DNA of 62,003 nucleotides, counting the filler, from Hausera hauseri (taxonomy: Eukaryota): assembly GCA_046269625.1 (NCBI GenBank). It is 10 parts of 10 records of this genome, joined end to end, with 100 filler letters (N's around TTAATTAATTAA, not from the genome) between each part and the next. Parts side by side here need not be neighbours in the genome. Positions count along the whole stretch, not along the records: positions 17,019 to 21,564 come from JBJURY010532898.1; 9 more parts are not named here. One strand, 5' to 3'. A program made the translations under genes and the position numbers. Under the pieces are notes generated by a model. The model was not told the origin of the DNA and did no database searches. It saw only the letters and a program-made list of their open reading frames with translations. This document shows, piece after piece, positions 17,019 to 31,107 of this stretch; the first letter of the stretch is position 1; the number at the start of each line of letters is the position of its first letter.

Positions 17019-17106
17019 CAAAAAAGAACTCTAATCGTTCTTGTATAACCCAAATTAAGAATTCAAATCGGAGTTTTAGACGTCTTAGAAGAGTCTTAAT
17101 GCACAT
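17019..17106 (-). CDS. LTR-encoded small ORF, partial (MCIKTLLRRLKLRFEFLIWVIQERLEFFF...)
   Basis: Homologous to 43878-44036 with many synonymous codon differences. Confidence 0.7.
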
Positions 17107-17580
17107 TAATTGTTAGAAAGTATTTTTTCTATATCCCTTGTTTTGTTTAATCTAATCCAAATATACAATGGATTCGAAGGAGCTGTAAATTAAAGGAAAG
17201 AATTATTTATTTCTTACTGTTAAGGTTTTATTTATTTATTTGTAAGTGGCGTACCCTACTTGTGCTTCAGGTGCCAACGCTATTACTTAATGGGAATAGT
17301 TAATATTACTTATTAAAGAAGAGATCAATAAGTCAAACAATCTTTTCTTAGAATTGTTACTTCAAATCTTCTTTGTTCTGGATTCGGAGTGGTTTCCCTT
17401 TTTGTCAAGACTTCAAATAAGAATGAAAAATATATTTCAAAATGGAACTAAATATCAATGGTAATATAGTTACAATGACAAACAACAATAGTCAAAATGA
17501 ATATAAAAGAAAAAATTACCAGTTTTACCGTTTTATAAATTTATATAGGGAATCTAACCCAAAAATTTCTCCTTTGTTTG

Positions 17581-17690
17581 AAAACAGTAGAAGTCCGAAT
17601 AGGAGTAATCGAAGGAATTTAACCTTTTGTGCAATAATTCAAAATTGAAGAAGTCCGAATAGGACTAATCGAAGGAATTTAACCTTTTGT
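17581..17690. repeat. 60-bp-period tandem duplication in the LTR
   Basis: AGAAGTCCGAATAGGA(G/C)TAATCGAAGGAATTTAACCTTTTGT at 17589 and 17649. Confidence 0.9.
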
Positions 17691-18122
17691 AATGGAAACT
17701 AATAAACATTTTAGTTAACTTGGACTAAATTTATGTTTGATAAATTTCTTTTTTTTGTGTGTGTTCGTTGAAATTTAGGTTTGTATTTATACTAATTTTT
17801 CTCTTTTTAAAAAGGAGGTGTTAAGTTGCTGTTTTTAGCAACTTGTATATGGGTTTTTAGTTGCTTATTTTAGTAACCTTTACTGTTATTTTTCTGTGAA
17901 GTTTGGCACACATTGTAGCATCTAAATGCAGTGGTTAGTAATAACTTTAACATCTTATTTTGTTCATCGAACATCCATCGTCACTATTCATAGAAATCAA
18001 TCAATATTTTGTTCAGTGCAAAACAACTGCAACCACGCATTCTGTGAGTTACAATCGAGGCAGGTGATGTTGATTTAGTTATGGACATTACTTACTTAAC
18101 AAATGAATCTTAATACTTAACA

Positions 18123-18135
18123 TCTTCCTCCCCTT
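18123..18135 (-). promoter_or_regulatory. Polypurine tract
   Basis: AAGGGGAGGAAGA directly before the LTR start TGTTAAG on the minus strand. Confidence 0.85.
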
Positions 18136-18327
18136 AAACAAATTTTCGTCAAGAAAATTTATTGTACGGCAAAACTGGTAAAATACTGTAAGAATAAAAC
18201 ATGATTTACACTGTAACATAAAGAATGGAAGTATACATAAAATACAGTGAAGAAAAGAAAAAATAGCAAAAAATTAATGTCAAATTATTCATAATGTTCA
18301 TTAAAAACGGGGTTTTGGTTACCCATT

Positions 18328-21300
18328 TTAACTCGCCATTTTCACTATCAGTTGATGCGGTTGATTGTTCATTAATATAGGATTATCAGTTTTTTGAAGT
18401 CCATATAAGTTTTCTAGTATGTATCCGTTTGACCCTTGGTATAGAATCATTCGGATGTTTGATTTCGCGTAGTCCATTTGAAGGATCTTACCATTCCTTG
18501 GTTTAGGATATGGCGTGTCATCCAATTGCATGGGTATTGGCTGGAAATTTACAATTACTTCATGATGTGTTTGTTGGAGGATCTCATATTCAACTCCAAA
18601 AACAGCCATATGTAGAGTATTATGTGTCTGGTGTTTGTAGACTAATCCAATAACTTTACCAAAATTAGCATTGGAGATCAGTAAGTTTCCATTGTACGTA
18701 TGTAACGTAGTTGTCGGTATATACGTTACGTTGATTATTTGTTTCGAATTTCCATAAAATAAAATAGACAACCGAATTTTATTATCAGGTAGTTCTTTTG
18801 TAGCAAATTTTTTGAGATATTCCTTTGTATGTTCTTTGAGTTGCTGTATAATCTTTCTCTCGTCATCCGTATGAATCTCAATTTTTTCTTTGATATAGTC
18901 GTTATGATATTTTGAATCTATTTGGTCGAATGAACCGTTAGCAATTAGATTATTGATTGGAGGCGTCCATTGTAGGTTCCATTTTTCATTTGTACAGGTT
19001 TTATTTAGACTTTCATAAATATTGATAATGGCGTCCATGATTGATTCCGCGTTTTTTGGGAATTCGTAACTTAATCCGTATAATTGTGGTAATTTTGTGA
19101 GACATTGTTTGATTCCTTGTTCATTGAAACGATTTGTGGAATTTGAAATTGCGAAAAGATCTACTATCCAATGTAAAATATCCAGGGGTATCCTTAATGA
19201 TTGTAATATTGTAACCGTATTAACGCTGATAACGGTGTATCCAAACAAATACTTGATAATTTCTGCTCGTACCATTTCTTCGTCTGTTGATTGATTTATG
19301 ATGGGTAGGCTGAGCCCGTGGTAATGTTCATTCGAATTGTCGATCTTTATTCTTGGGTTAATGAATTCACGGTAAGTTATTAATCCGTTTGAGTCTGCTA
19401 TTATGACTTCAACAGGCAGTGGCTGTCCTCTTGTCGAATAGGATAAAGAGGTACTCAAATATCGGTAATTGTTGGTTCTGGTTAGCTGGAAATTCTGCTG
19501 TATGTCTTTTGGCGGTTTTTGGGCAAACATTGGTGGGTTTAGACCAAGATAATTATCCATAGGTTGACATATTTCTACGGCTATCACAATTGGAATAGTT
19601 AATGGTCTGAAATGGATAGGAGTTTGGAATGCTCTTGCTTTGATTTCTAATGTAGTTTTCGAGTTTATGATTGCTTCTTGAGGATTTGCTCCATCATAAA
19701 TTTCTTGTTCGGTTCGAAGTTGGATTTTACCTTGAGCCATGTGTAAAAATACGCATTTGAATGGTAATTTTATCCCGAAAATAGTACTCAAGTTTATGTC
19801 ATATAGTGCCTTATCTATTCGGATAATTTGGAAAGTGCGATCATTCGTCGTCATCGTTTTTAAATTATTAGGTAGAAATCTCGCCTCTGGGAAGAATATA
19901 TCATCTGTAGATTTAACAGCTTCCATTATAGTATTATAGAATTTTGGTGGAAAGATATTTCTTGGATCTTGATGATGCTTTACAAATTTCTGAGATAATT
20001 CTGTCCATGTCCTGTTTAGTATCTCATCTTGTTTGCATTCTTCCATATTTCGGATTATTGTTTCTCGCAACTTGAGATATTTCTTTGGTGGGAGATCTTC
20101 GATTTGGATTCCCTTTCGTCTTATTTCAATCATTGATTTAACTTGTGGCACATTACTGGAAACTGGTTTGGAGATGGGTATCGATAATATACCTCTTGAC
20201 ATTGGTAATTGAGTTGGATTACTGAAGGAGAACTGGGATGAACATGATTGAGTTGGTAGCACAACCCTTCTTTTAGGGTTTGCTATGACTGATATAATTG
20301 ACTGATCTGAATCTGATTCTGTGGATGAAGCGTCGAGATCGATATCTGTGTCCATTATTGTTGGAAACTCATCCCTTTTTTTAGAGATATTGTCTGTTGT
20401 TGCTGATATTTTATCCATATTTGGTTTTGAAAAAGTCGCTGTAAGAAAATAAAAATTTTTTATAGTATTTGTAATAGAGTAGGTGGTTACTCTATAGGTT
20501 TCTTGCTGACCAATTTCTATTGGTCTTTTAGACTTTGTGTAAAGTATTGTGCTTTGGTTGGCACATTTGTGTGTTGGTATATAAAATTTACTTATTTCAT
20601 GTGTGTGTTTATAAAGTTTTTTAAACTCCCAAACGCCAACTGCCCACTCCACACCAAAATCTGATCTAGTGGTTGCTAAACATATTAAGCTAGTTGTTAC
20701 TAATAGAGTTTTGTTCATAATAACTCGTTTTTTAGAGATTCTTTTTAATTCGATAATTATGAAAGGTGTGGATATAGAGAGTAACAAGAGTATTACTATT
20801 ATAGAAGGTATTATGGTTCTTAGCATGGTTATTTGACTATTAGGACTGGTAGTTAATTGGGTTGGTGTATTTATTAGAAATTCTTCGTGTATTACATATC
20901 TATCGGTTCTAGTTAGGGTTCTAACCGTTTGATGCTTTGTTTTTGCTTGGTTTTGAGTAAGAATGATCAAATATTCCTCGTCAGGTTGGAGATCAATACA
21001 TCGAGTTATTCTTTCTTTTTCTTTCATGACAGTGTATATATTATGGTATTTTCCTACGCAAGTTATGAATATGGGATCTTTTACTAATTGTAAAGTTTTA
21101 AATTCAATATATGAATCCGAGGGGGTGATGAGTATTTCAGGTATTTTACTTAGTTTGGAAGTAGTAATTTGATGGTTACTAAAAGTTGATAATGCTATCA
21201 TGGTTGGTGAAGTTATTTGCTTTACTTGGAAAAATTGTAATAGCGACATATGGATATGAAAGTTCAGAGCCTTTTCGCCGGACTTATGTTTGAACAATCT

Positions 21301-21564
21301 AGGGAAATAATATGTTATTTGTAAATCAACGTCGTTTGTTAAGGTCGGTCTCTTTACCATGACTTTGTCTATTAATTTTGGTTCATTGTCCTTTTCTTGG
21401 GTAAAGAAGAAGTTAGGGCCTATTTTTTCTACGTGTACCTGTCTTGCTATAGGCAGGATTTTCTGGTTTGGTTTCAATAACATTCTTGTTGTTAGAAAGT
21501 AAAGGTCTATAAGACAGATTTCATTTAATAATGGAATTGAACAACGTTTAGTTGATAACCAAAT
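18328..21564 (-). CDS. Intact Gypsy 3' ORF (>1078 codons, open to the contig edge): FN3-like ectodomain, TM, second hydrophobic segment, then accessory protein with an inactive DEDDh-like domain
   Basis: RCIDLQPDEEYLIIL (FN3-like); IIPSIIVILLLLSISTPFIIIEL-KRISKKR (TM plus basic stop); EVIIADSNGLITYREFINPRIKIDNSNEHYHGLS (DEDDh fold). Lies just 5' of PPT/LTR; collinear with 39970-42584. Confidence 0.85.
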   Translation of the reverse strand: MWLSTKRCSIPLLNEICLIDLYFLTTRMLLKPNQKILPIARQVHVEKIGPNFFFTQEKDNEPKLIDKVMVKRPTLTNDVDLQITYYFPRLFKHKSGEKALNFHIHMSLLQFFQVKQITSPTMIALSTFSNHQITTSKLSKIPEILITPSDSYIEFKTLQLVKDPIFITCVGKYHNIYTVMKEKERITRCIDLQPDEEYLIILTQNQAKTKHQTVRTLTRTDRYVIHEEFLINTPTQLTTSPNSQITMLRTIIPSIIVILLLLSISTPFIIIELKRISKKRVIMNKTLLVTTSLICLATTRSDFGVEWAVGVWEFKKLYKHTHEISKFYIPTHKCANQSTILYTKSKRPIEIGQQETYRVTTYSITNTIKNFYFLTATFSKPNMDKISATTDNISKKRDEFPTIMDTDIDLDASSTESDSDQSIISVIANPKRRVVLPTQSCSSQFSFSNPTQLPMSRGILSIPISKPVSSNVPQVKSMIEIRRKGIQIEDLPPKKYLKLRETIIRNMEECKQDEILNRTWTELSQKFVKHHQDPRNIFPPKFYNTIMEAVKSTDDIFFPEARFLPNNLKTMTTNDRTFQIIRIDKALYDINLSTIFGIKLPFKCVFLHMAQGKIQLRTEQEIYDGANPQEAIINSKTTLEIKARAFQTPIHFRPLTIPIVIAVEICQPMDNYLGLNPPMFAQKPPKDIQQNFQLTRTNNYRYLSTSLSYSTRGQPLPVEVIIADSNGLITYREFINPRIKIDNSNEHYHGLSLPIINQSTDEEMVRAEIIKYLFGYTVISVNTVTILQSLRIPLDILHWIVDLFAISNSTNRFNEQGIKQCLTKLPQLYGLSYEFPKNAESIMDAIINIYESLNKTCTNEKWNLQWTPPINNLIANGSFDQIDSKYHNDYIKEKIEIHTDDERKIIQQLKEHTKEYLKKFATKELPDNKIRLSILFYGNSKQIINVTYIPTTTLHTYNGNLLISNANFGKVIGLVYKHQTHNTLHMAVFGVEYEILQQTHHEVIVNFQPIPMQLDDTPYPKPRNGKILQMDYAKSNIRMILYQGSNGYILENLYGLQKTDNPILMNNQPHQLIVKMAS

Positions 21565-22146
21565 NNNNNNNNNNNNNNNNNNNNNNNNNNNNNNNNNNNN
21601 NNNNNNNNTTAATTAATTAANNNNNNNNNNNNNNNNNNNNNNNNNNNNNNNNNNNNNNNNNNNNAAATGTCAAACCATAAAGAGGCCAAATATCTAACCA
21701 AATAATAATAATAAATTTGCCAAATATATAACCATACAGTAATAAAAAGGCCAAGTATCTAACCAAACAGTCAAATATCTAATTTCTTTAATCTTGTGAA
21801 GCCAATCATTGCAAGTAAAACTTTGCTTGAAGAACAACTGAAAGCCAAATCAGCTTGCTTTTATCTCACCGCAAGAATTGAACCACGGCAGCCAGTTCAA
21901 CCATCATCTTTCTGTACACATATAGATGACACAATCACATTATTGAATGTCAGCCAATGTCAACCAAGATGTCTTCCATTACCAGGATACAAGGAAGTTC
22001 ACAGTCTACCACCTAAATACCTACCTGGACAGTTGGAAGACTAACACCTTCACAGCTCTTTTTAGGACTACACCTGCCCTTTTCAGAACTCACCCAGGTA
22101 ACTGATTGAAGAGTTATAACAATAACAACCACCATTCACTACAATG

Positions 22147-22345
22147 CGGGGTGCTCTGTGGCTCAGTGGTTAGGATGCTCACCTCGGAATCTGATGGTAG
22201 GGGTTTCAAAACCACGCAGGATCCTACTCACGATGGCCTGGCCATCTGTTGTGCGTTTTAGTGGGGCCATTAAAATGTTGGCAGCTCTTGCTGATGCCCC
22301 TACGCACCACAAGGTGTATGGATCAATTTTTTTTCCGCTGTAATG
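22147..22345 (+). mobile_element. tRNA-derived SINE
   Basis: Box A TGGCTCAGTGGTTAG and decayed box B GGTTTCAAAACC followed by a non-tRNA tail. Confidence 0.6.
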
Positions 22346-22461
22346 TCCTAACACTGACCAAGATCATGAAATGATTTCATTCTCTGAACCTCATAAATAA
22401 ATATCAATTTACATAATTTTATGTCAGCACACAAAACACATCCAGTTTCATGCAAAAATAC

Positions 22462-25400
22462 CTGAGTCTGATCTTGAAGCAGAATGTCTTCCATGAGCCA
22501 GAACCGTCTGCAAGTGCACAAACATTTCAGTTAATTTACCCATTAAAGAATAACATTGCAACATTTTCAACCTTGTCTTTTTTTCATTCCAACATACAAC
22601 TTGGATCATGCTTCTTTAGTAACTTTGTTGTCAGGTTCCATACTGGTACCTACATTTGTATATTTACAGATATTTTCTTTCTCTCTTTAAAATTTGGCTA
22701 CTCCTTGATTTACGTAGAATTAATATGTAACGAGATGTACATTATGTGTGAATGAATGCAAGAGTATGAGCGGTGTGAGAAAAGAAGGGCAGAATGTAAG
22801 ACGGGCCTGTGTGCCCAATTTTTATCCCTTTGAAAATAAAGTTGATTTGATTTGATAATAATGTTTACCACCCCTGATGAACTATAGGTGAAATTCGCCA
22901 ATCACGCGGTGAGCATTCTGATAATGAATTCCAGGACAAAACATTAAACATACATGAAGGTAATTTTATCTCTGTCAGCTCTGTGCATGGACACCGAGTT
23001 AGTATTCTGGTTCACAGAATGTCTGGCAATGAGATTGGGTCTGTTTTGAATAGCTGCTCGACTGCGTCAAAAATCAGGTTAAGGTCATCCAAGTTAGTAT
23101 GCAAATGTTATTTTCACTGCACGATGGTGCTGTCCTTAGATGCTACAATTTCTGCGTTGGTCAAACACCCTCCGTACATCACCAGCAAAGTACTCATGCA
23201 TGGCAACTCCTCTCTTCATACCAAGCTCTATTAACCTGTTGGTAAAGGTGATGCTCTGTGAGACCTGTATTCCTAAAGATCCATTGCTCCTCCCTGTGAA
23301 ATCACACCTTTGCTTGTCAGCGAATCTGCATGTTTGTCACCTGTCACACCTGCATGCACATGCACAAAGATGAAGGTCAACCTGCTAATAGTTAACCTCA
23401 TAAAAGAGTTGAGCCACTGCCTGCACCTATACATCCATACATCCATCTTTGGCTTCATTTGACATTTAAACGTATCACTCAGTAGAACAAGAGTAATAAT
23501 TCTTATGCAGGATCAGCCATGGGGAAAACTTCCTCTTATCATGTGCAGGAGCAGCAGATAGACAGCCCTGTCTGTTTCTAACAGGAGCACCTGGTCCAGA
23601 AAACTATATGAAGCTGTCTTGAATAACTTATCTGGAGATAATGGTAGACATTCTCTCAGATTTGATAAGGTTGAGAAGCAGACTGCTCAGTTAGGAAAAT
23701 ACATTAGTAATAACAACAACTAAACTGTAGACACATCAGAGGTTACAACAACTTACTGTAATAGACACATCAGAGGTTACAACAACTTACTGTTCAATGC
23801 CCAGGTATGCCATTAAGCCCATATCACTCTGTCTGTTGAGTTTGGTCACCCTTTCCCAGTAGCGGTCATCACTCTTTTCATTGTATAATGCATACAAGTC
23901 AAACAAGGGAGGATAAATCTTGGGCAGAAAAATGGGATATAACAGGCTTGCAGACGTAAACACTTCTCTAAAAGAAGAAAAAAATTGCCATTTTATGCAA
24001 GCGTAAAGAATAGAACATTAGGATGGATGTAACATTATGTTACAGGCATTTTTCTCACTGCGAAAGACGGGGCATTATGGCTGAATATTAGAACAAGGTC
24101 CCCAGTCAATGAATTCTATGAGGTATTCTGAAAATATGTCAGTCACAACAATAGTGTTGCAGTTAGTGCGCTTGTTTTCAATCATATGGTTGTGGGTTCA
24201 ATCCCAGCTGTGGTGTGTTGAATTTTTATGACCAAAACGACCTCATGGATAAACCCAGCCTCATGACATTGGAAAAGTAAAAGCGACCTGGTGTTATGCT
24301 GACCACATACCTAAATACGTGCCGTTGGTCAATGAAAATGTGGATACCAACTCCACGTTCCCTTGAAGTCTTTAAAGTGTGGATGGGGCCTTTTAAGTCT
24401 TTAAAGTGTGGATGGGGCCTTTTAAGTCTTTAAAGTGTGGATGGGGCCCATTTATTTGCACTTTATGATTCTGAAAATGTAATGTTATATCTATTTTGTC
24501 TCCAGCTTTCCTTGAGGCATAAGGCACCAATGAGTAATTGACACCAAGATATGTCCGGGTTATGTAAGGTCAGGCTCATTCCGGATTTTTCTGGTTTGTA
24601 TCCGTTCTCTATTTATAGTTTACCTCCAGGTCTCTTCAAGTCACCCCGTGCTTTTATTCCTGCTTGATTTCATCTCAGATCAGGCCATGCGTTTCTTGAT
24701 TTTGTGCATCCTCAGTTTAAGGCACTTCAATTTCCACCTTCTTTTCTCAATTGTTTCCCCATTAATGTTAGTGATGACTGTGCACTGTGTTATTTCCCCA
24801 TTTCTTTGTTCTCCAATAGATTGCAATGTCTTCCCTTAAATATCTTCCCTTAGAGCCTCTGAATGACTAGCTGTTTTAGTGTTCGTTGTCCATGTCTCTG
24901 ATCCATATAGGAGAACTGTGTGAACATTTGACTTGTATGTATTAAGGTTGCCTGTGTCCAGTATGTTCAAGATTTCTTTTTGCCCAGTTCCCTGAATCTT
25001 GCATCCAACCATTTCATTTTTGCAGTAATTTCTTTTTTTCCATATGACCATCCTTGACATCATAAGTCCCATTTTACTTGAATGTTACAATGTTATACAA
25101 AAGAAGTCTTCTGTATTGGTACTGGTCTTGAATTGTATCCTACAAATCAGCGAATATATTTTCTTATAATAATATTTAAGTGGAAAACACTGATTTTGTA
25201 ATAAACACATGTGTTTTTATACTTCACACTAACAAAGATAGTACACAACCAGAGTGGTGCCATGATGAAAGCATACCAACAGAGGTGATGTAATAAAGGA
25301 AGCATACCACCTAAACAGTGAAGAAATAAAGTAAACATACCAGCCGAGAAGTGCAGTAACAACAAACAAAAAAAGCTATCATCATCAGGTGCCAACTGTA

Positions 25401-28323
25401 AGAGCCATAAGTCATCATGGACAAATCTGTCATTACCATTGAGAAAGAGATTCCTGCTGTATTATATCGAACCCATACTAATGTATGGCTGCGAATCTTG
25501 GACACTGAGTAAAAAAATTAGAAAATTCTTAAAAAGCAACAGAGATGTGATTTCTCAGAAGAATGTTGAAAATCCCTTGGACCGCAAAGAGAACAAATGA
25601 AGATGTTTTACAAGAAGCAGATGCAGAAAGAACGCTTACCAGTAAGATCAGAAAGAAACAAACATCTATGATTGCCCATATTTTAAGAAGAGAAGGTCTG
25701 GAGAACTTGGTCACACCGGATGGCAAAGTGGATGGCAAAGAATGAAGTGTCTGGATGGTTTGCAAAATGGCTCAGAAGTAGGTCAACAGCAGAGATGACT
25801 GAGGACACCAGGAATAGCGAGAAATGACAGCCTACACTTCACAGCATGGCACCTGATGATGTTGTCACCATAATGCCAGGCTGCCTTTATTTTTCCAAAG
25901 AATTTCTCCGGTACCTATTTTTGAGGCTGGGTGGGCTTCCAGAGCCGTTTTGATAAAAAAAAAATCCAGTACCCACAGCAGGGATTTAATCCATGACCAC
26001 ATAATCAGCAGAAGAGTGCACTAACCACTACGCCATCGTGGCTCCCTTCCACTACTTTTATTGCCTGGTAATTTGCTTGTGGTGACCAACTTCTCCAGGC
26101 CTTCTTATCTTAAAACATGGCTAATCATAGATGTTTATTTCTTTCTGATTTTACTGATAAGCGTTCTTCCTGCATCTGATTCATGCAAAACATCTACATT
26201 TATTCTCCTGGCTGTCCATGGGATTTTAAACTTTCTTCTGATAAACGACGTCCCTGTCCCTGTTGCGTCCCTGTTGCTTTAAAGAATATTTCAATCTTTT
26301 ACTTAATGTCCATAATGTTCACAGCCATGTAGGAGTATTCTTATTCTTTCATTCATGTTGATCTATCTCTGCAGATGTGTCTCCCTGATGAGCTGCACTG
26401 TGTTCTGGAGCCATATATCTTTGTGTCTAGTGAAGTTTCTCTTGGCCAGTGAGTGTGCCTCAATGGATCATACTGGGTTCAGTTTTGGAGGATATGTTCC
26501 GCAGTCTGGGGTGACTGTCCACACATGCACAAGGCAGATTCACCTATTTTTTATTCTGTGTACATATGGCTGCAGAGTCGGTTGTCCTATTCTGAGGCGA
26601 AATATTGTGACTTGTTCATTTCTATCCAACATATGACAGGCATCTGATAATACTGAACATGATTTCTTGTGTTTCTTTATCATACTCTTCTTGTGGCCAT
26701 ACGTTATTGAGATGTTTGGTTGCTCCATTACAATATCGCCTTTGGCCAGAGTATCAGCTTTCTCATTTCCTGGAAATCCACAGTGGGATGGGATCCATTG
26801 CATAGTTACTCGTTAATGACTGCTAATTTTGGCCAGAGTGTCTTTCAGCTCTGTCAGTTTTCTGCTCTCAAGGCTCTTCTAAGACCGATTTTGCATCTGA
26901 CAGGAATGTGAGCCAAACTTAGATCTTGAGATTTCCTCAGCTGCCGCAATAATTGCTCTGACTTCAGAATTGCAGTTATTACTGTGTTTTCCTGTTGGTT
27001 TGCTGACAGTACTGATATACAGGAGTATGGATTTGATATAACATTGTAGGACATGACTCTTTCTTAACTACAATGACAGATTTGTCATACACAATGTTTT
27101 TGGAATGCTATTTTTGCCCATGCAATTCTAATTTCTATGTCGCATATACCATCCGATGTTATGAGAGTTCAGAGACATTTCTGTTTTACTTTTGTCCTTT
27201 TTATCTTTATACTGACAGGTGGTTATTATTCTTAGAAACTGTGTTACTTTTTTGTATAAAGACAGAGTCCTTTCCATTTACTCTCAATTACTATGTTTAG
27301 CATCTCTCATTCACTGGTATAGTGTAAATTATTTTAACTGTATCCTCCAACTTTTAATCTGGGCATCATCTGCAATTGATCTCATTATGCTTTCACTGTA
27401 CATGTGTTCTATCACCAGACCGACCTGTTCTCTCTGACTGCAAGTTATCAGCCCTGAGATGAGGGCCAGAATGGCTTGCCAAGGGCCCTCACAAAACTCA
27501 CACTATTTGTTTAATCTGTTTAAGTAGCACGAGAAGAAGAACCTGTATATAAGGAGAAATGTAATGCCAGGCATGAACAAGATGGATGTTACTTGTTATT
27601 TATCTCCACATCACCGAGTGTCTGCTCATCTGGATGAGCCCTGATAAGGGCATAGTCCTAAGAAGGATCCTGGAGTAGTTGAGAATTCCTGTTGTCTCAG
27701 TGGTGTCTAGGAGGGTGGATCGAGGTCCTCTGGCTTTAGTGCAATGCTTGGCCTCCTAAAAGTGACCCACCTCTCAAATGGACCATGACGTTACAGCAAG
27801 CAAGTCTAAGTGGAAAAAACATTTATACAACAAGAAGGAAAAGGAATATAAAATGTATATGACAGTCACAAAGAAAACTAACCGACAAGACAAATCAGTC
27901 CTCAGTTTGGAATCATTTAGAATAAAAAAAAGAACACATAAAGAATCTGGAACAAAACTGCTGGAAAAACACACAAGAAAAAAAAAAGGAATATTTTGTG
28001 AGGACATAAAAACAGCTTATGCGTCATAAAGAATGTATCAGTCTGATTGGAGACATCAGGTAACACAAGATCTTTAAGCTCCTGATAACAAATATTGTGA
28101 GAACTTAAATAGTAACAATGACAGTAAAACTAATAAATCTAATGTGGCTGTCATGACACATTATGATGATGTCTACAATAATGAAAGATCTTACACTTCA
28201 GGATCGTCAATCTCCAAACCCTCAGAAAACTCCTTAGCCTCCTCAGTTGTTCGGGGAATACCACGTGATGGTGGATAAACGTGCACTGGACCTCCATTTA
28301 CTGGTAATGAAGGAAACAGGATC
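22462..28323 (-). CDS. ALS2: Alsin (ALS2-like) C-terminal region; exons 28195-28323, 23791-23967, 22462-22507
   Basis: Spliced peptide ILFPSLP...DDPEVEVFTSASLLYPIFLPKIYPPLFDLYALYNEKSDDRYWERVTKLNRQSDMGLMAYLGIEQRFW matches alsin (LLPRLYPPLFMLYAL...YWECVLRLNKQPD). GT-AG borders and phases are consistent. Confidence 0.88.
22980..23640 (-). mobile_element. Non-LTR retrotransposon RNase H fragment
   Basis: FIFVHVHAGVTGDKHADSL resembles (W/F).PGHAG..GNE.AD.L; degenerate. Confidence 0.6.
24150..24450 (+). mobile_element. tRNA-derived SINE with 29-bp x3 tandem tail (24366-24449)
   Basis: Box B GGTTCAATCCC; AAGTCTTTAAAGTGTGGATGGGGCC repeated three times. Confidence 0.6.
24500..24950 (-). mobile_element. 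RTE-type LINE 3' fragment
   Basis: YKSNVHTVLLYGSETW. Confidence 0.7.
25400..25860 (+). mobile_element. RTE-type LINE 3' fragment; related inverted copy at ~26050-26340
   Basis: LMYGCESW...RRMLKIPWTAKRTNEDVL...HILRREGLENLV. Confidence 0.75.
25866..26045 (-). mobile_element. tRNA-derived SINE; related copies at ~28980-29110 and ~32345-32410
   Basis: Head GGAGCCACGATGGCGTAGTGGTTAGTGCAC; shared body AGGTACC.GAGAAATT..TTG.AAAATAAA.GCAGCCTGGCATTATG. Confidence 0.7.
26340..26900 (-). mobile_element. Non-LTR retrotransposon RNase H plus C-terminal fragment
   Basis: QWIPSHCGFPGNEKADTLAK and QVTIFRLRIG. Confidence 0.8.
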
Positions 28324-29697
28324 CTATGGTAGTTAAAGAAATGAATTCAAATTAAAAGATTTTAAAAAATAAAGGAAGGTTGACGGAAGGCAAAGAACAA
28401 AAAAACAAAATGGAAAAAAAAACAAAGCAAATAATTGTAGTAAACTGATATTTTGTGAACAAATACAAAATGTAACAATACTGGATGGAGGAAATGTATA
28501 TTAAAAAAACAAAAAAAAACATCTAGGACATAATATTTGTTCATTTGTTTCAGATTTTTCCAATTACCATTGATGACATTTTGCAGATACAAGGACAGCT
28601 CAATTTCTGCCTGCCGCTTGGCCTTTTTGTCCTCTGACAATTCACCAAGAAATATTTATTTGCGAATGCAGTTACAATCCTTTCTGCTCACATATTCCAA
28701 CACTATATGTCTTCTATTATGAAATACTGCTAAAAAAAGATGGTAGCCTGACAACACTTGTGCGACTCATTCTCGCCATTTAATGTATGTATTTGTGTGA
28801 ATCTCATGTAACATGTTTAAGGACTGTCAATCACCACAGGATTAGTGCTTTGGGAGGAACTGAAAAAGTGACACGAAAGCCTATGGACCTTTCCAGAATG
28901 GAAATGATTTTCACAAATGATAGACATATAACAAAGCTGCGATAGAGTACAGGATTGTGCACTCACTTGCTAATAATAAGATCATAGGTTTTACTCCAGG
29001 TAGGGAACTTATCCAACCAAAATAGCTACACAGTCCATCAAGCCTAAAAAAATTAGGTACCAGAGAAATTTTCTTTGAAAATAAAAGCAGCCTGGCATTA
29101 TGTTGATCATATTATNNNNNNNNNNNNNNNNNNNNNNNNNNNNNNNNNNNNNNNNNNNNTTAATTAATTAANNNNNNNNNNNNNNNNNNNNNNNNNNNNN
29201 NNNNNNNNNNNNNNNATTTGATATATAAAATGGCTACAAGTCAAACACCCGATCATACTGCGTATTGTGAATTATATGGAAAATAATAAAAAATACCATC
29301 AGCTTTTAAGTCATTTAAAATTAAAAGCACGTAATGATAAATTAAATAATTATAATGTTTTTAGTTGAAATGGGAAACTTCGTTCACAGGTATCTCTTGC
29401 AAAAAATTTTGTGTGAAATTCGTCAACTTCTGATAACCATATTTTTCTGCCTGTCTCATCATAACTTCAAAAAATATTCCTTATGATTTTCTGAACTAAA
29501 CTTCTTTTTACGATAAATACAAAAAAAATCTGGCATATTAAAATATTCTCAGAATGACAAATCAAAACTTCCTAAAATCGCTATGAAAAGCAAAATGGAG
29601 AATAGAAATTTTTTAAATTCGAAAAGTTAAACTTTATTGTATTATTAAAACAATCAAAAAATATCTATATGTTCAATTGATTCTTATTCACCCCATA

Positions 29698-31107
29698 TCA
29701 GTGCATTCCGTAACATTTATGATTCATCACTGACTGAATGAAAAGCAATTGATACTCACTCCAATCTAGTGCAGCAAATTTCGACTTAAATGATTTCGAA
29801 ATAACCACTTCATTCGGTATATCAATGTAATTGCGTAGGGGTGGAGAAAAATAATAATCCACTTTTAGAAACTCTTCATCGATTCGATCGTTTTCTGTTG
29901 CGTTTCCATATTCTGCTTGTAATGCTAATCCAGCCAAATACTGAGCTTCCGACAAATCTAGTGGAGGGCAATTTCGATAGAGTATATCTTGTCGAAGTTG
30001 AAGATAGAGAAGTTTCTGATTAAACTGTTGCATTTCACAAAATGAATCTTTATTTGGATAAAATTTCATGATGTAGTAAATATGAAGGTATTTATCGTCG
30101 TTACTATCTGGATGTGTTCTTTGCCGTTAAATAAGATATTGAGATAATTTCTGTACATTGGTATCATCGGTAGTAAAAAAGAATTCGTAATCAAGTTTTA
30201 TGGCGAATCCGAAATTCACGAACTCCAAATCTGGATAAGACATTTGAGTCAGACTGATAATATTGCTGATTGTGTGGCGTTTGTTGACGCTTGTTATATG
30301 TAAGGATGTACCATTCAGAAAATGTACGAGCAGTTCAGTATGTATCAGTCGATTACTGTTTGATTTTACAAACATCGACTTCTTGCGTTGCTTGCTCAAC
30401 GTTGCATAGGATATTTCATTTTTCCGAATGAGGATTTCGGGACCCAGCACATGCCTCATACTATCCAATCTGGCTGTAGTTGATTTTTTGCCTGATTTCA
30501 ATTGAGCAAGTTGTTCTTTCAAGCCGAATGAATGATTTAGAACATGATGGTCCAAGGATTCATTGTTATTGGCATTCACGTTTGAAGATTTGATCGGCCC
30601 ATTAAGTCTAGATTTTCGTCTGGCTCGAACACGTTCCAAAGTAGCGGTTATGTTTTCTTTGCTGAACTTTGCCAATGAGTCTAACGAGGTCAACATTAGA
30701 TTTTCATAATTTGCTTTGAACAATGGCTGTTTTGCAGCATCTCTGTCATTGTCACTTTGGGGTAGGGAGAATGATGACGATGAATTTTGATGGCTTGAAG
30801 CGCTAGAGCTGGTATCAAACAGTTGAAATTGGTGAGGCAGAAATTGTTTACCTGTAACACCAATGCAAGCAAACGAACTTTGTAATCCATCACTGTGTCG
30901 AACTGCACTTTTACCAACAGCAGATAGACTTCTCGGTCTAACCTTTTTCGGCCTTTTTTCTGCTAATTCATAATATTGGTAGAGGTTCATTAAGTAGTAT
31001 CCATAAGACCTTCCGACAGTGTATGTTTTAGCCTTGTTGGAACATATCTGCAGTAATTCCGATAGTGTTAGTCTATTGTCAGCATTACTCTCCGTCATTT
31101 GACGCAA
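29698..31107 (-). pseudogene. PTPN13/FRMPD2-like KIND-end plus FERM domain gene, with in-frame stops at 30127 and 29698
   Basis: MTE....RLTLSELLQICS (KIND end); LGPEI; VHFLNG; FGFA....EFFF; KFY; LYLQLRQDIL; LAGLALQAEYG; YGMH. Confidence 0.75.

Follow-up and report, generated by a model that had tools for sequence, protein, structure and literature searches.

Can a mobile element keep a gene for an exonuclease that has lost its catalytic residues, and if so, what would such a protein do? The question is raised by a locus of the eukaryote Hausera hauseri (GenBank assembly GCA_046269625.1). The window is a stretch of 62,003 nucleotides, filler included, joined from ten parts of ten records of this genome. 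The piece analysed here, 17019-21564, comes from JBJURY010532898.1; all coordinates are positions in the whole stretch. An earlier note on this DNA had described an open reading frame (ORF) for a catalytically dead relative of the REX4 and ISG20 exonucleases, carried as an accessory gene of a retroelement. Our reading, to which we give a probability of about one half, is that the piece holds the 3'-terminal gene of a multi-copy element, most likely a long terminal repeat (LTR) retroelement, and that the gene encodes a membrane-tethered pseudo-exonuclease acting as a non-catalytic nucleic-acid-binding or adaptor module.

A long open reading frame in a multi-copy element

The minus strand of the piece carries one uninterrupted frame of 1078 codons (Table 1). 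Translation from the first ATG gives 1051 residues, and another 27 codons are open up to the piece edge at 21564. The edge lies only 81 nucleotides 5' of this ATG, so 1078 codons is a minimum length. The remaining five reading frames are riddled with stops, and in DNA of about 32% G+C overall (about 28-38% along the piece) the long frame is not due to chance. The ORF of the earlier note, 18328-20418, was correctly called fully open; it covers no more than the 3' two-thirds and misses about 1.1 kb further 5'.

Contigs of four public sequencing runs (X1 to X4) were mapped to the piece. Run X1 gave 1755 contig pieces at 80-100% identity and run X2 gave 318, as in a dispersed multi-copy family. 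Over the body of the ORF (18387-20666), word depth in X1 was about 100-360, compared with about 17-21 for contigs matching the locus near-exactly, a ratio of about 5-18x that mixes copy number with conservation. The depth profile was rejected as a copy count, since conservation contributes to it too. Copies range in identity from below 90% to above 99%, and the differences among them are mostly transitions. The second organism, that of run X2, carries copies about 97% identical along a 1-kb stretch.

Depth is far from even at the 5' end of the frame. It reaches 18,000-31,000 at 21275-21564 and about 2,500 at 20971-21274, with a dip at 20819-20970. A much larger repeat family may have this end in common with the element, or conservation may be far stronger here than in the rest of the frame. 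Runs X3 and X4, labelled as other organisms, yielded short identical or near-identical contigs at 19533-19770, 20377-20639 and 21254-21479, at a depth of 2-5; close relatives, horizontal spread and carry-over between samples are all possible sources.

A domain probably derived from DEDDh exonucleases

A HMMER search of 1.84 billion representative proteins returned two relatives, both weak: P0001 (333 residues, E 8.6e-6) and P0002 (870 residues, E 2.1e-4). Both cover query residues 515-860 and are 21-24% identical to the Hausera protein. In a cluster look-up both proved to be singletons from ENA assemblies, and the Hausera protein itself is absent from the collection. P0002 contains two domains of the Hausera protein in the same order: its residues 69-223 match a conserved upstream domain (BLASTP E 2e-5), which is also found in P0001, and its residues 243-419 match the exonuclease-like domain (E 5e-7). 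The upstream domain is marked by the motifs LPNNLK..T.NDR and HMAQGKIQLR. The shared upstream segments quoted in the earlier note, RTFQIIRIDKA and GKIQLR, are both present and fall in blocks conserved with P0001 and P0002.

Other searches returned nothing informative. Scans of the whole ORF with Pfam, NCBIfam and PHROGs gave no match apart from a single weak NCBIfam match, which is noise; word-index protein searches came back blank or with the query alone; and no related loci turned up when the alignment and P0002 were searched against viral and metagenome contigs.

A profile built from the Hausera domain, P0001 and P0002 was searched against 177,635 PDB sequences. It produced just four matches, three of which are DEDDh enzymes. 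The two best were ISG20L2 (E 4.5e-4) and the PolC exonuclease (E 1.4e-3); ISG20 was the fourth, at an E of 0.97 that is not significant alone. Queried alone against the same sequences, P0002 matched DnaQ (8e-4) and the PolC exonuclease (3e-3), the sole strong matches outside its RING finger. All of the DEDDh matches span one stretch, which comprises beta-2, beta-3, the P...G(I/L) motif, helix B and beta-4, and PolC is aligned in the same register by the profile and by P0002. A length of about 175 residues is also compatible with a DEDDh core. Language-model features of the 696-residue ORF of the earlier note gave RNase_T clusters (REXO5, NEF-sp) for all of the top ten, with a score of 0.90, a lead only, since 4-10% of shuffled proteins reach the same score. 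The DEDDh resemblance claimed earlier from pattern matching is now backed at the profile level, and the domain very probably descends from a DEDDh exonuclease.

Descent is not the same as membership. Pfam RNase_T (PF00929), searched with E up to 1, matched neither the Hausera protein nor P0001 nor P0002, which leaves all three short of the curated family threshold. Because the domain fails at this threshold and at every catalytic motif, it is, as judged from its sequence, a derivative of the ISG20/ISG20L2/REXO enzymes and not a member of the family. Pfam Maelstrom gave no match either, and no Cys/His cluster (ECHC motif) is found within the domain.

The C-terminal part of P0002 differs from that of the Hausera protein: residues 744-796 form a C3HC4 RING finger (Pfam E 2.6e-7) in place of the Hausera C-terminal region. 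In another organism, then, the exonuclease-like module is joined to a putative E3 ligase domain.

Loss of the catalytic residues

Two-metal catalysis in the DEDDh family requires the carboxylates of the Exo motifs. In the Hausera copy all three motifs are altered (Table 1). At the position of the ExoI D-x-E, P0001 has N-L-A and P0002 has N-T-G; in the Hausera copy the surrounding sequence, STSLSYSTRG, contains no acidic residue at or adjoining the motif. The ExoII position is Met in P0002, and P0001 stops short of it. Near ExoIII a possible acidic residue is D844 in the Hausera copy and Glu in P0002. The earlier claim that the D-x-E of ExoI and the Asp of ExoII have been lost is borne out for this copy, with ExoI replaced in both relatives as well and ExoII also in P0002; the motifs quoted with it, STSLS and HGL, are found here. 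The conclusion that the DEDDh-like scaffold of this copy is catalytically dead holds, insofar as it can be read from these positions. Since the positions are replaced also in proteins only 21-24% identical, the loss appears to be old and to have been retained. P-R-x-K and G(I/L) positions, on the other hand, are invariant across the three proteins.

Architecture and proposed role of the protein

The predicted transmembrane helix (Table 1) had been overlooked in the earlier account of the ORF. A basic stretch, KRISKKR, follows it directly, and by the positive-inside rule the C-terminal part of about 800 residues would face the cytoplasm. The predicted topology is an N-terminal part, one transmembrane helix, the basic stretch and then this C-terminal part, whose conserved core is a two-domain module of the upstream domain and the REX/ISG20-type derivative. 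For the N-terminal 382 residues the best language-model feature score was 0.78, which is uninformative, and assignment to env is not possible.

Table 1. Features of the gene and its 3' flank, in positions of the window
Feature	Position	Strand	Basis and remarks
ORF, 1078 codons	18328..21564	(-)	Stop at 18328-18330, first ATG at 21483, open to piece edge
Predicted transmembrane helix, IIPSIIVILLLLSISTPFIIIEL	20740..20817	(-)	Kyte-Doolittle scan; sole strongly hydrophobic segment
Conserved upstream domain	19489..19968	(-)	BLASTP to P0002 (E 2e-5) and alignments; common to P0001 and P0002
DEDDh (REX/ISG20)-like domain, about 180 residues, without catalytic residues	18949..19488	(-)	BLASTP to P0002, profile matches, RNase_T features
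ExoI-equivalent, strand beta-1	19441..19449	(-)	S-L-S (motif STSLS) instead of D-x-E
ExoII-equivalent	19207..19209	(-)	Ile in place of the catalytic Asp of HND in ISG20L2; HMMER alignment to 7yw5_A
ExoIII-equivalent helix, KNAESIMDAIINIY	19015..19056	(-)	No His at H-x4-D; acidic residue ambiguous; register inferred
C-terminal region, about 205 residues	18331..18948	(-)	No detectable relatives
Polypurine tract, AAGGGGAGGAAGA, 13 nucleotides	18135-18123	(-)	192 nucleotides past the stop; TG (TGTTAAG) directly after
Candidate 3' LTR, 905 nucleotides	17218..18122	(-)	TGTTAAG...CTTAACA; alternative end at 17819 gives 304 nucleotides

A DEDDh scaffold stripped of its metal ligands would be unable to perform two-metal catalysis, and its substrate groove can persist; the invariant P-R-x-K and G(I/L) positions would fit a groove that has been kept. 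Such a groove would probably bind RNA 3' ends, and the module may serve the element's own RNA, ribonucleoprotein or particle.

After the helix and the basic stretch, at 20668-20718 on the minus strand, the frame reads MNKTLLVTTSLICLATT, which resembles a signal peptide. The site lies near a roughly six-fold drop in depth and may mark the boundary of a module or an internal start; no stop lies in between. A split into two genes at the methionine of MNKTLL (20718) was rejected, as there is no intervening stop codon.

The carrier of the gene and alternative explanations

A number of observations weigh against the reading proposed above, and they are considered here together with the explanations that they favour. 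The first concern the carrier. No reverse transcriptase, integrase, gag or 5' LTR was found within the piece, and the interior of the candidate LTR is roughly equal in depth to the locus-matching contigs, not doubled as two LTRs would give. The end of the LTR is ambiguous too, with CTTAACA, the inverted counterpart of TGTTAAG, ending both at 17819 and at 17218 (0.18 occurrences expected by chance). An endogenous viral element, a mobile element of another class or a host gene family that has expanded might accordingly carry the gene, in which case the polypurine tract and the TG...CA termini would have arisen by coincidence. However, just 12 of 5000 shuffles produced a polypurine tract followed by TG, and here the tract occupies the position past the stop that is expected of a retroelement. 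A is enriched along the whole coding strand between roughly 18270 and the piece edge, and the many diverged copies with their transition-dominated differences also speak for a retroelement. We consider a carrier of another kind unlikely, and an LTR-retroelement setting probable. The 905-nucleotide form of the LTR is preferred over that of 304 nucleotides because other copies skip 17882-18118: X1 and X2 contigs join 17881 to 18119, without the 237 nucleotides that stand just after the TGTT start in this copy. An Rfam scan of the piece was blank, and a tandem-repeat scan found five short, low-scoring arrays only.

The candidate LTR and its surroundings have further features. In this copy 17882-18118 may be an insertion or a U3 variant. 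A 53-nucleotide direct repeat of 91% identity (17578-17630 and 17638-17690, starts 60 nucleotides apart) lies within the candidate LTR and may represent a regulatory block of U3 type that has been duplicated. The two arms of a 27-nucleotide inverted repeat, 85% complementary, lie 612 nucleotides apart, one in the candidate LTR (17516-17542) and the other between the stop and the polypurine tract (18155-18181). Past the end of the candidate LTR, the flank at 17019-17170 is a high-copy repeat with a depth of about 2,400 in X1, and the element may be nested in another repeat.

A more basic objection is that the DEDDh resemblance is spurious, in which case the fold is unrelated and "dead exonuclease" a misnomer. 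The Hausera protein alone, queried with phmmer as the ORF and as the domain, matches neither Pfam RNase_T nor any PDB sequence, so that the DEDDh link depends on P0001 and P0002, and P0001 alone found no match among the PDB sequences either. Comparison with DnaQ, RNase T and Orn of Escherichia coli was not significant (hhalign E 0.41; phmmer), though the alignment of P0002 with E. coli DnaQ, itself not significant, falls in the expected register. Structure prediction followed by Foldseek, the check suggested in the earlier note, was carried out and did not deliver a confident model: AlphaFold2 reached a predicted local distance difference test (pLDDT) score of 34.7 and 29.9, and Foldseek found nothing at E<0.3. 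The input consisted of three-sequence alignments, from which distant DEDDh sequences were left out as circular; so shallow an alignment accounts for the low pLDDT and makes the Foldseek result uninformative. Several DEDDh chains do appear in the Foldseek top 50 for the poor model, with TM-scores of 0.1-0.2 that carry no evidential weight. The shuffled-protein rate of the language-model score points the same way. Against all this, four DEDDh structures (ISG20L2, the PolC exonuclease, DnaQ and ISG20) are matched over the same stretch, the profile and P0002 agree on the PolC register, and these matches head the lists outside the RING finger from 177,635 sequences. The domain length and the strand-strand-strand-helix order seen in both low-confidence models fit a DEDDh core and are compatible with an RNase H-like DEDD fold. 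A chance resemblance is quite unlikely.

A narrower version of the proposed role starts from a host REX/ISG20-type exonuclease that was captured by the retroelement. Now dead and tethered to a membrane, the protein would be a decoy that binds RNA 3' ends, or partners of host 3'-5' exonucleases, and so keeps RNA of the element from being degraded or from being made into small RNAs and trimmed. This specific role is doubtful, and we hold to the broader reading of a nucleic-acid-binding or adaptor module.

Might the domain instead be a relic of a captured active exonuclease, now functionless and decaying neutrally? All catalytic residues are lost, as such a relic would have it, and the very different motif sequences that the earlier note gives for two further copies, both outside this piece, would fit fast evolution of the accessory region. 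Selection on the frame was assessed from the 38 best-supported in-frame differences out of 600+ variant sites, a small sample. Of these, 17 were synonymous and 21 non-synonymous; the synonymous share expected from the observed substitution spectrum is 0.30, which gives a ratio of non-synonymous to synonymous rates (dN/dS) of about 0.54 (p 0.04). Within the body of the ORF the counts were 5 and 3 (dN/dS about 0.26, p 0.06), and the 5' part, at about 0.66, was not significantly below 1, as a decaying gene would also have it. These differences lend weak support to purifying selection on the frame. The unbroken frame is the stronger argument, because about 4.5% of random substitutions in it would give a stop and 1078 codons are free of them. 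Neutral decay also fits poorly with a scaffold that is conserved at just 21-24% identity while its catalytic positions are replaced, and with the excess of synonymous differences, and we regard it as improbable. The earlier suggestion of a non-enzymatic role under selection stands to the extent that the open frame and the weak synonymous excess favour retention over decay; any specific function given to it, such as RNA-end binding or antagonism of RNA decay or of small-RNA defence, is speculation.

The last set of objections concerns the loss of catalysis itself. The ExoI register was taken from the distance between beta-1 and beta-2, HMMER having left this part unaligned, and acidic clusters lie just past ExoI in P0001 (AENEEG) and P0002 (GEDEKG), both of which may have residual activity. 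That the domain is still a nuclease by way of non-canonical residues, with these clusters and the possible acidic residue near ExoIII in its favour, is very improbable for a copy in which ExoI neither contains nor adjoins an acidic residue, ExoII has Ile and ExoIII lacks its His, given the carboxylates that two-metal catalysis needs.

Relation to known systems

Non-env extra genes of retroelements are rare and largely unexplained. If the reading of a membrane-tethered pseudo-exonuclease is right, a transposon carries a DEDDh derivative that has lost catalysis and yet keeps an open frame conserved across deep divergence. Binding to host decay factors or to RNA of the element, if it occurs, would make the protein a testable example of a host RNA-processing fold reused by a transposon; as a decoy, it would be a new kind of transposon-encoded counter-defence protein. 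With no Pfam match and two relatives among 1.84 billion proteins, the family is nearly invisible to standard annotation.

The closest known enzymes are those of the REX/ISG20 type (ISG20, ISG20L2, REXO4 and REXO5), with which the domain shares beta-2, beta-3, the P...G(I/L) motif, helix B and beta-4, as well as a similar length. It differs from them in lacking the ExoI D-x-E, the ExoII Asp, the ExoIII His and any Pfam match. Those enzymes, moreover, are encoded by host genes, whereas the Hausera domain belongs to a repeated element and is joined to a predicted transmembrane helix, the upstream domain and a novel C terminus.

Among retroelements, the Juno and Vesta LTR retrotransposons and the Athena Terminons of bdelloid rotifers encode a DEDDy (RNase D-like) ORF3 (Rodriguez et al. 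2017, PMC5408684). There, too, an exonuclease-superfamily domain forms an additional 3' ORF of a retroelement, and its role is unexplained. In contrast to the Hausera protein, in which the domain is of the DEDDh/REX type, dead and downstream of a helix, the rotifer ORF3 is DEDDy, with its catalytic DEED intact and no transmembrane or coiled-coil segment (PMC5408684). This catalytically intact ORF3 was the only exonuclease-type extra gene of a retroelement that we found in the literature, where we found no report of an inactive DEDDh-type exonuclease domain in retroelements. Retroelement accessory ORFs and exonuclease-derived non-catalytic domains are both already known; a dead DEDDh domain in an accessory protein of a transposon is probably rare and so far undescribed.

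In its tether the protein resembles TREX1, a DEDDh DNA exonuclease anchored in the endoplasmic reticulum membrane: a DEDDh-type domain is tethered by one transmembrane helix in TREX1 and would be so in the Hausera protein. TREX1 restricts L1 independently of catalysis (as cited in PMC10123124). TREX1 is nonetheless an active enzyme with a C-terminal anchor and a vertebrate host defence gene, and no specific sequence similarity to the Hausera protein was found.

Exuperantia is a non-catalytic exonuclease-like protein. Maelstrom and EXD1 are DEDD derivatives that have become inactive but continue to bind RNA (PMC5408684), and a nucleic-acid-binding module of PML, termed PXL, was described in 2026 (PMC13659232). 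These are host genes, several of them directed against transposons, and no sequence similarity between them and the Hausera protein was detected. The likeness is one of kind: an exonuclease-like domain described as kept for nucleic-acid binding over catalysis, which is the role proposed here. If the proposal is correct, the transposon protein would have counterparts in Maelstrom, EXD1, PML and similar proteins of the host, several of them involved in controlling transposons. PML and P0002 both pair an exonuclease-like domain with a RING finger, and the order in P0002, with the exonuclease-like domain first and the RING after it, is the reverse of that in PML.

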